A stretch of DNA of 64,000 bases from Phallusia mammillata (Eukaryota). The DNA is taken from positions 14,260,001 through 14,324,000 of the forward strand of contig OZ281499.1 of assembly GCA_965637545.1 (NCBI GenBank), written 5' to 3'. A program made the translations under genes and the position numbers. Positions 58,039-58,483 of this stretch are shown here, in pieces (positions within the stretch are counted from its first letter, which is position 1; each line of letters begins with the position of its first letter). The notes beneath the pieces were generated by a model. That model made no database searches. It was not told the DNA's origin and saw only the letters and a program-made list of their open reading frames with translations.

Positions 58039-58483
58039 ACTGGGCTGCTGTAAAAGCCACAACAAGAACTAGCCTCAAACAAAGAAAAGGCTGCACCAAC
58101 CGGTGTCAAGTTGCACGAACCCGTGTGAAAGCGGGAAACAGCAACAAGCGGCTTCTCTAAACAAAGAAAACCTTCCTCGAACCGCTTGCAAGCGGACAAG
58201 AACAATGAAATTTCTGGGAAAACTTGTAAACAAGTTACCCACATGAAAATAACAAAAGCTGCCTCAAATCCAAAACTGAAAACAAGGCTGCAGGGTAGTC
58301 CTGAAAAGGACTCTTTATGTGTGTTCAATTCACCCAGAAAAAAGTGAAGAGAACGGACTATCTAAACAAAAATGTTACAAGAACAAACTCGTCTGGTTAG
58401 TAAAAGAATCGAAATCTATCAATAGCCTTTACTGTATCCTGATGATGTGTTCGATGATAACGTTGCTGTTTCCGTTGTGGTAT

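Follow-up and report, generated by a model that had tools for sequence, protein, structure and literature searches.

A histone-type stem-loop in the 5' untranslated region of a LINE retrotransposon residing in the histone array of Phallusia mammillata

Background

What is a hairpin built like the 3' stem-loop of histone mRNAs doing in the 5' untranslated region (UTR) of a retrotransposon? To our knowledge the histone stem-loop is, by textbook account, unique to replication-dependent histone mRNAs. The question is raised by element D, located in the stretch of Phallusia mammillata DNA analysed here (64,000 nucleotides, contig OZ281499.1, positions 14,260,001 to 14,324,000; hereafter the window). 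The window represents a tandemly repeated histone array (unit length ~4,993 bp), in which Rfam detects 8 histone stem-loops above threshold and a direct scan 14. A preliminary description of the hairpin proposed that the RNA of the element recruits SLBP without being cleaved, either for cell-cycle-coupled expression or to guide its RNP to the histone locus. We favour, tentatively and at somewhat under an even chance, the reading that the hairpin is a selected cis-acting RNA element which would be bound by host SLBP without U7-directed cleavage, and which is a candidate link to S phase.

Results

Structure and surroundings of element D

Element D is a non-LTR (LINE) retrotransposon with an apurinic-type endonuclease, located on the minus strand. 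Its ORF2 (53042-56521) encodes the apurinic-type endonuclease (Exo_endo_phos), a reverse transcriptase (RVT_1) and a zf-RVT domain; upstream of it lies ORF1 (56530-58041; 503 aa from the ATG), which is without a Pfam domain and contains 90-nt tandem repeats, and the element ends in a poly(A) tail (51931-51954) after an AAUAAA. The assignment to LINEs is based on this set of features (Exo_endo_phos and RVT_1 in ORF2, ORF1 upstream, poly(A) tail), and the clade is defined to the level of architecture (APE + RT + zf-RVT). No relatives of ORF1 were found in a word-based search of public proteins. The poly(A) tail joins the 5' leader of a sense-oriented H2A gene ~19 nt before its ATG at 51909. Alignment of the flank with intact array units sets the 5' end of the element at position 58481; an H2A gene in head-to-head orientation has its ATG two bases further on. 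The whole 5' UTR (58040-58481) measures 442 nt.

The two H2A genes that flank the element (51909-58484) are on opposite strands and both read outward from it: one meets the poly(A) tail with its leader in sense orientation, the other abuts the 5' end with its ATG head to head. The orientation of the histone array flips at element D, and identical junctions are present in L001 and L006. The copy number of the 90-nt repeat in ORF1 (57143-57324, minus strand) varies: 180 nt are skipped by one contig in run X1, and the repeat number differs between L005 and L006.

The hairpin and its host models

The hairpin occupies positions 58297-58312 of the minus strand (element nt 170-185). It consists of AGUCCU (58312-58307), the loop UUUC (58306-58303) and AGGACU (58302-58297), and its context reads CAUAAAG-AGUCCU-UUUC-AGGACU-ACCCUGCAG. 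The 5' flank is AAAG (58313-58316) and the 3' flank ACCC (58293-58296). This position, the two flanks and the distance of ~170 nt from the 5' end had been given in the preliminary description and were confirmed by the sequence and by end mapping. The hairpin is in a LINE 5' UTR, 271 nt before the ATG of ORF1, and not past a histone stop codon. With histone stem-loops it shares the 6-bp stem, the 4-nt loop, the G-C pair at position 2, U at loop positions 1 and 3 and the U-A top pair, in agreement with the features earlier listed as retained, and also the 5' adenines (AAAG/AAAC) and the 3' ACCC. In the older copies L006, L007, L008 and L025 the 5' flank is AAAC, as in the host flank AAAAC. The host 3' flank is ACCCA or ACCCG; this side is ACUG in L008 and AAAA in L025, and its first A alone is constant. 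When the 442-nt 5' UTR is folded, the hairpin is present in the minimum free energy (MFE) structure as well as in the centroid structure, and its flanks are single-stranded. The MFE of the UTR is -130.6 kcal/mol (z = -3.97 relative to shuffles).

The stem-loops of H2A, H2B and H3 in the array read GGCUCU-UUUC-AGAGCC-ACC(C/U). This is the form (GGCTCT-TTTC-AGAGCC-ACC) that the preliminary description gave for the stem-loops of the array. The stem-loop of H4 (50253-50268, plus strand) is GGCCCU-UUUC-AGGGCC-ACCCA followed by the HDE GGGAGAGAAUUUU. Three stem pairs are changed on both sides relative to H2A, H2B and H3, as had been counted, but just two relative to H4. Judged by sequence, no stem-loop of the host comes closer to the LINE hairpins than that of H4, which had been overlooked in this role. 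The HDEs of H4 and H2B (GGGAGAGAAU) contain an AGAGAAU core 16 nt after the stems. The stem-loop just 3' of the H1 ORF (window 38590-38605, plus strand; L003:2137-2152, minus strand) has the form GGCUCU-UUUC-AGGGCC with U-G at position 4 and a distinct HDE, CAAAGGGAAAAAC. Beside the 4,993-bp array there is a second array type with a period of 6,198 bp as judged from the spacing of H4-type stem-loops (G000:C6:14411732-14424128, C21, C257).

The specificity of the resemblance was assessed by a strict scan of both strands (128 kb) for hairpins with six perfectly paired base pairs and a loop of 4 nt, to which published constraints relevant to SLBP were added one by one (loop U1/U3, G-C pair 2, U-A top pair, 5' arm RRYYYU, 3' AC, A-rich 5' flank). 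From 86 perfect hairpins the survivors were the 14 true histone stem-loops and the hairpin of element D. By our own estimate such a hairpin is expected by chance ~1e-4 times per window and ~0.3 times per 240-Mb genome. The hairpin is more than a chance occurrence.

The covariance model of the histone stem-loop gave a different answer. RF00032 aligned with the hairpin in register, but in a 71-nt search the score was 11.5 bits (E=1.4) against a gathering threshold of 34, and no match at E<=10 was obtained in 2.5 kb; by the criterion of Rfam this is not a histone stem-loop. The low score is due to the first stem pair, which is A-U in element D and in the L028/L029 family as opposed to G-C in 14/14 host stem-loops, and to the missing downstream element. 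A purine-rich, U7-pairing HDE, expected ~15 nt downstream, was looked for after the stem and none was found, as the preliminary description had stated. Starting 26 nt after the stem there is a 13-nt invariant run, GAUUUGAGGCAGC (58258-58270, minus strand), whose purine content is too low for an HDE; possibly it is what decay has left of an HDE-like element such as that of related LINEs (see below).

The 5' end of element D is derived from H4

The first 56 nt of the element (58426-58481, minus strand) resemble the start of the H4 mRNA, another feature that had escaped the preliminary description. Nucleotides 1-26 match the H4 leader ACCACAACGGAAAC at 25/26 positions and are followed by decayed H4 codons 1-7, the ATG being lost; relative to window positions 49860-49911 the identity is 96% over 26 nt and 77% over 56 nt. 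The match begins at the expected transcription start of H4, ~28 nt after the TATAAG box. All young D copies have the H4 leader at their 5' end. The window copy and two others are flanked by H2A, yet they carry the H4 leader, which shows that the leader travels with the element. Three copies (L003-L005) sit within H4 in sense orientation, and the TATA box and start site of the H4 promoter immediately precede them (L004:1900-1945, minus strand). Target sequence at the 5' end and sense copies behind the H4 promoter form the pattern of target-specific LINEs co-transcribed with a host gene. The leader implies that the RNA of the element would start at, or like, the H4 start site, and together with the copy positions it predicts co-transcription of element D from the H4 promoter.

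Element C (window 38850-39060, plus strand) is inserted in H4 after codon 13 (GGATTGGGAAA|TTAGTC). Its leader has TTGGATT repeats and an H4-start-like GACGCACCACAAAC motif, and no histone-type hairpin; the leader of L025 is of the same type.

Public assemblies were used to look for transcripts. Twelve runs, with assemblies of 12-31 Mb relative to a 240-Mb genome, hold 84-93% of the sampled words of element D; none of them is recorded as RNA, and their RNA status is a guess made by the search tool. In two runs single contigs cover most or nearly all of the element (6,107 nt, minus two 90-nt ORF1 repeats, and 4,749 nt). The contigs that reach farthest in the 5' direction stop 4 and 8 nt short of the end of the element, and all of them cross the hairpin unbroken. 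This evidence is weak, because de Bruijn contigs also break at repeat boundaries and because the RNA status is a guess, but it fits D transcripts that would be full-length and uncut at the hairpin. As RNA-like contigs run through it, the hairpin would not be an mRNA 3' end.

Conservation of the hairpin

The genome contains 8 copies of the D leader, six of which are 98-100% identical, the others being 91% (L007) and 81% (L008). The 16-nt hairpin is unchanged in all 8 of them, down to 81% identity, and in all 10 copies of the D family in the genome. In a four-way alignment of D leaders the hairpin and the next two bases tie for the longest invariant run of the UTR. The probability that all 16 hairpin positions are invariant is ~0.011, and equally long runs arose in about half of the simulations; conservation within the D family alone is suggestive only. 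This, and a local fold that is not unusually stable (z = -1.2), would be compatible with a neutral palindrome that arose by chance, or with a palindromic protein-binding site acting at the DNA level in an internal promoter.

A stronger case is provided by L025, judging from its sequence. The ORF1 of L025 is 60% identical to that of element D and its leader is otherwise unalignable, yet it keeps UAAAC-AGUCCU-UCUC-AGGACU-A 3 nt before the ATG of ORF1. When the pattern AGYCCUUYUCAGGRCU was searched genome-wide, 29 matches were obtained versus 1 for the reversed control. The stem is complementary in every match, and all matches that could be placed are in LINE leaders of the D family, L025 or the L028/L029 type; a young family of the latter type (19 copies) has AGCCCU-UUUC-AGGGCU ~200 nt before ORF1. 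Survival of the hairpin in a leader diverged beyond alignment and the excess over the control both speak against a neutral or DNA-level palindrome, and so do the changes on both sides of stem pairs across families (see below). Moreover, the loop is asymmetric and belongs to the sense strand only (UUUC/UCUC/UGUC), and a DNA palindrome would not constrain the loop. We consider a chance or DNA-level origin improbable.

Hairpins in the leaders of related LINEs

The regions upstream of ORF1 were compared in 20 further LINE loci, with ORF1 proteins 26-33% identical to that of element D. In almost all of these loci the sense strand of the leader contains hairpins of canonical histone type, most often a pair of them ~225 nt apart. 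Altogether 15 ORF1-related LINE families bear GGCCCU-U[UCG]U[CU]-AGGGCC or variants on the sense strand of their leaders, and the GGCCCU/AGGGCC stem is exactly that of host H4.

The first hairpin (SL-a) has the form CGUUG-GGCCCU-U[UG]UC-AGGGCC-ACCAA. Its variants include GGUCUU/AGGACC, in which both sides are changed, the G-U intermediate GGUCCU/AGGGCC, and the loops UUUU and UGUU. Directly after SL-a comes ACCA, and at a distance of 20-21 nt from the stem there is AGAGAAU, which also forms the core of the HDEs of host H4 and H2B. RF00032 scores SL-a at up to 24.2 bits (gathering 34). To judge from the sequence, a LINE leader with SL-a and AGAGAAU contains what looks like an entire signal for histone 3' processing. 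In L068-L082 and L087 (e.g. L076:672-733, minus strand; L068:806-867, minus strand) SL-a, ACCA and AGAGAAU are located ~240 nt into the 5' UTR. The second hairpin (SL-b), CUCCC-GGCCCU-U[UC]UC-AGGGCC-CCUGC, has C-rich flanks (CUCCC / CCUGC), and by its flanks the L028-type hairpin belongs to the SL-b class. Unlike a histone 3' end, SL-a and SL-b both cap longer helices, whose arms covary (for SL-a, CGUUG/CAACG to CGUUC/GAACG); these extensions suggest a larger RNA structure with a logic of its own.

A genome-wide search with GGCCCUUNUCAGGGCC yielded 93 matches versus 0 for the control. About half of them are H4-type stem-loops spaced one array unit apart, and ~45 belong to clusters of LINEs (C3, C2, C6:13.3-13.9 Mb, small contigs). 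The homology shared by copies with differing flanks begins ~240 nt before SL-a or, in the case of the L028-type hairpin, ~434 nt before it; the hairpins are therefore internal to mobile units. Rfam families looked for in the flanks of the related LINEs offered no explanation.

This distribution bears on the earlier suggestion of homing, in which the RNP would be carried to the histone locus body by hairpin-bound SLBP, so that insertion is directed into histone genes. The location of the young D copies, which are in the array or in small contigs with array units, beside start codons of H4 and H2A, is what homing would produce. The LINEs with the most canonical hairpins, however, sit outside histone units: for the ~45 LINE-borne hairpins no histone sequence was found within 1.5 kb at the loci checked. 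Elements B and C are inserted in H2A and H4 of the array without having the hairpin, and the sequences flanking L007 and L008, two older D copies, are not of histone origin. In elements of this class, target choice is normally determined by the endonuclease. The homing part of the proposal is thus much weakened, and we regard it as very improbable.

Among the 15 distinct hairpin variants pair 1 is G-C in 11 and A-U in 4, and pair 3 is C-G in 10, U-A in 4 and U-G in 1. Pair 2 (G-C) and pair 4 are invariant, and the top pair is U-A in 14 variants. In the loop U1 and U3 are fixed, positions 2 and 4 vary. The covariation score was 0.352 compared to 0.215 for shuffles, and was reached by 0/500 of these. 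As the variants were collected by a paired-stem scan, their 100% pairing is partly by construction; a relaxed scan (one mismatch, any loop) of homologous sites found no unpaired versions.

The hairpin is not essential to every lineage, since SL-a or SL-b has been lost in some families and no histone-type hairpin was found in the leaders of B, C, L024 and L026. In L029 (1000-1040, plus strand) the L028/L029 family is without the SL-a tip, and the lower helix persists as the palindrome GUUAGGCCUAAC. In L068-L072 it is SL-b that has lost its tip, and the enclosing CUAG...CUAG helix remains. L040 (1-1091) contains a LINE of the L028/L029 type on C3, located within a 555-bp tandem repeat; its first 26 nt resemble part of this repeat and form another target-like 5' end.

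Origin of the hairpin

In the related LINEs a 16-nt H4-start-like motif (CGCACCACAA-GG-AA) is found ~55 nt after the HDE of SL-a. In element D the H4-start-like motif is the 5' end of the element. The distance from the motif CACCACAA to SL-b is 140-212 nt in the relatives, the distance to the hairpin of element D is 170 nt, and D and SL-b have CCUGC just after the stem in common. On account of the matching distance and the shared CCUGC, the D hairpin is likely to be the positional counterpart of SL-b.

In the ORF1 tree element D groups with L024 and L026, which have no hairpin; the other hairpin-bearing families form a clade apart from it, to which the hairpin-less B and C are sister. By parsimony, one origin of the hairpin followed by two losses is as good as two separate captures, and common descent of the D hairpin with those of the other clade is one of two candidate histories. 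Element D is not adjacent to the L028/L029 family, and the tree does not divide shared descent from convergence as the source of the A-U first pair in these two.

The arrangement of stem-loop, HDE and H4-like start in the relatives has the appearance of a fragment captured from the histone array. This raises the possibility that the hairpin is a relic: a histone 3' end would have been captured by 5' transduction or read-through of a histone gene, or by template switching onto H4 mRNA, and would now serve as a generic structural piece or as a binding site, either for the ORF1 or ORF2 protein of the element or for a host factor other than SLBP, which would play no part. Mature histone mRNA ends right after ACCC, and it is right after ACCC that the likeness between element D and the H4 stem-loop stops; the element also begins with the H4 leader, and in the relatives the stem-loop, the HDE and the H4-start-like motif follow each other in array order. 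SL-a and SL-b, tips of longer helices with flanks unfit for SLBP, and the strong structure of the whole D UTR would likewise suit a relic. Sensitive BLAST of the D UTR with the histone unit, however, detected only the H4 leader and the stem-loop; no similarity to H4 coding or 3' UTR sequence is left between nt 57 and 156, so that interpretation of the D UTR as an internally deleted H4 mRNA is conjectural. The flanks in the D family (AAAC, ACCC) are more histone-like than those of the relatives. Moreover, what is invariant or nearly so across families (the G of pair 2, U1 and U3 of the loop, the U-A top pair) matters for SLBP but would not for a generic hairpin. On balance we think it unlikely that the hairpin is such a relic, although this explanation deserves serious weight.

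Discussion

A gene for SLBP is present in the host: the SLBP RNA-binding domain is encoded at G000:C4:2447741-2448336 (minus strand) in two exon-like pieces scoring 49.6 and 38.6 bits. A genome search for U7 snRNA with RF00066 gave no match, its controls being uninformative, and an anti-HDE + Sm site pattern had 18 matches versus 26 for the control, which is chance level.

That the hairpin of element D is a putative SLBP binding site is plausible. The only base-specific contact of SLBP is with the G at stem position 2 (G7-Arg181), and wild-type affinity needs two adenines on the 5' side and one on the 3' side (PMC10388802); a stem-loop mutated in the 5' adenosines and the second pair did not bind SLBP (PMC3884669). 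The D hairpin has G at pair 2, the 5' adenines and the 3' A, whereas SL-b with its C-rich flanks falls short of the need for 5' adenines. The positions fixed across LINE families correspond to the published recognition pattern (PMC10388802; PMC3884669), which supports the SLBP reading. Three points argue against it: the A-U first pair, where G-C is universal in real histone stem-loops, the rejection by Rfam, and SL-b, the likely positional homologue, with its C-rich flanks on top of a longer helix. What stands of the preliminary description is an SLBP-type RNA element, conserved, on the sense strand and with the features that SLBP needs; its homing part does not stand as well.

The reading that we favour for element D can be put as follows. 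The hairpin would be an RNA element of the 5' UTR kept by selection, and would belong to a histone 3'-end-type module (stem-loop with or without HDE) in the leaders of a LINE superfamily, a context not noticed in the preliminary description, which did not include the HDE-like element of the relatives. Element D would be transcribed as an H4-led RNA, some copies from their position in H4 directly behind the H4 promoter. Host SLBP is predicted to bind the D mRNA without U7-directed cleavage; as element D has no HDE, binding without cleavage is the likeliest outcome. Binding, in turn, could tie the translation, stability or nuclear traffic of the D RNA to the S-phase histone-mRNA pathway. Binding by SLBP and its consequence are what we infer from the features described above.

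For the whole superfamily the corresponding proposition is that these LINEs took over the histone 3'-end signal (an H4-type stem-loop, often with an HDE) to engage SLBP, and in the HDE families also U7, in order to process, translate or time their RNA to S phase. We find this doubtful in its full extent. U7-dependent processing of the leader in the relatives with SL-a and HDE is nevertheless a real possibility; it is opposed by the fact that full-length copies must come from uncut RNA, and that the downstream product of histone 3' cleavage is normally degraded. If the proposition is true, the ~45 canonical LINE-borne hairpins, about as many as the H4-type stem-loops of the arrays, could compete with histone mRNAs for SLBP.

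What is new here is the retrotransposon-leader setting of a histone-type stem-loop; the hairpin type itself is known. The conserved, covarying copies in LINE leaders would represent the first known borrowing of the histone stem-loop by a mobile element, and they suggest that these LINEs may tap the histone-mRNA machinery of the cell. If this is true, there would be a testable link between retrotransposition and the histone metabolism of S phase. It would also bear on how site-specific LINEs that ride on a host promoter obtain an mRNA that can be used. Experiments should be straightforward, since the hairpins are small, compensatory and loop mutants exist ready-made among the natural variants, and SLBP binding assays are standard.

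The closest known structure is the histone stem-loop as modelled by RF00032. The hairpin of element D is like it in having a 6-bp stem, a UUUC loop, the G-C pair 2, the U-A top pair, an A-rich 5' flank and ACCC; in the related LINEs the stem is exactly that of H4 and AGAGAAU follows at roughly the right distance. It differs in its location in a retrotransposon 5' UTR, its A-U first pair, the missing HDE and its score (11.5 versus 34 bits). Eickbush and Eickbush in 2010 and Ruminski et al. in 2011 reportedly described HDV-like ribozymes at the 5' end of R2 and of other co-transcribed LINEs. Such ribozymes are likewise structured leader RNAs in site-specific LINEs that use a host gene promoter. 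By analogy the hairpins could help translation or determine where the RNA begins, and SL-a with the HDE, processed via host machinery, would if functional be the host-dependent counterpart of the R2 5' ribozyme. Unlike the ribozymes, the LINE hairpins are not self-cleaving, and the host would have to supply SLBP and U7.

No report of histone stem-loops or SLBP sites in retrotransposons was found in the literature, the nearest being that on human HERV1/LTR12, which contains HDE-like motifs and is repressed through U7 snRNA, the motif affecting transcription by way of NF-Y (PMC11417402). There, too, a retroelement imitates part of the histone pre-mRNA processing signal and is thereby linked to the histone machinery. 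That case, however, involves the HDE and silencing by the host, whereas here a conserved stem-loop is found in a LINE leader and in the context of an invertebrate-type tandem array. No description of histone-targeting LINE families was found in the literature either. LINEs specific for multicopy genes are known from rDNA (R1/R2) and, in the Tx1 group (Keno, Mutsu, Utopia), from snRNA and 5S genes (PMC4640811). Element D resembles these in combining an endonuclease with a reverse transcriptase, in residing in tandem multicopy host genes and in having a target-derived 5' end, and differs from them in its targets, which are the 5' regions of histone H4 and H2A.
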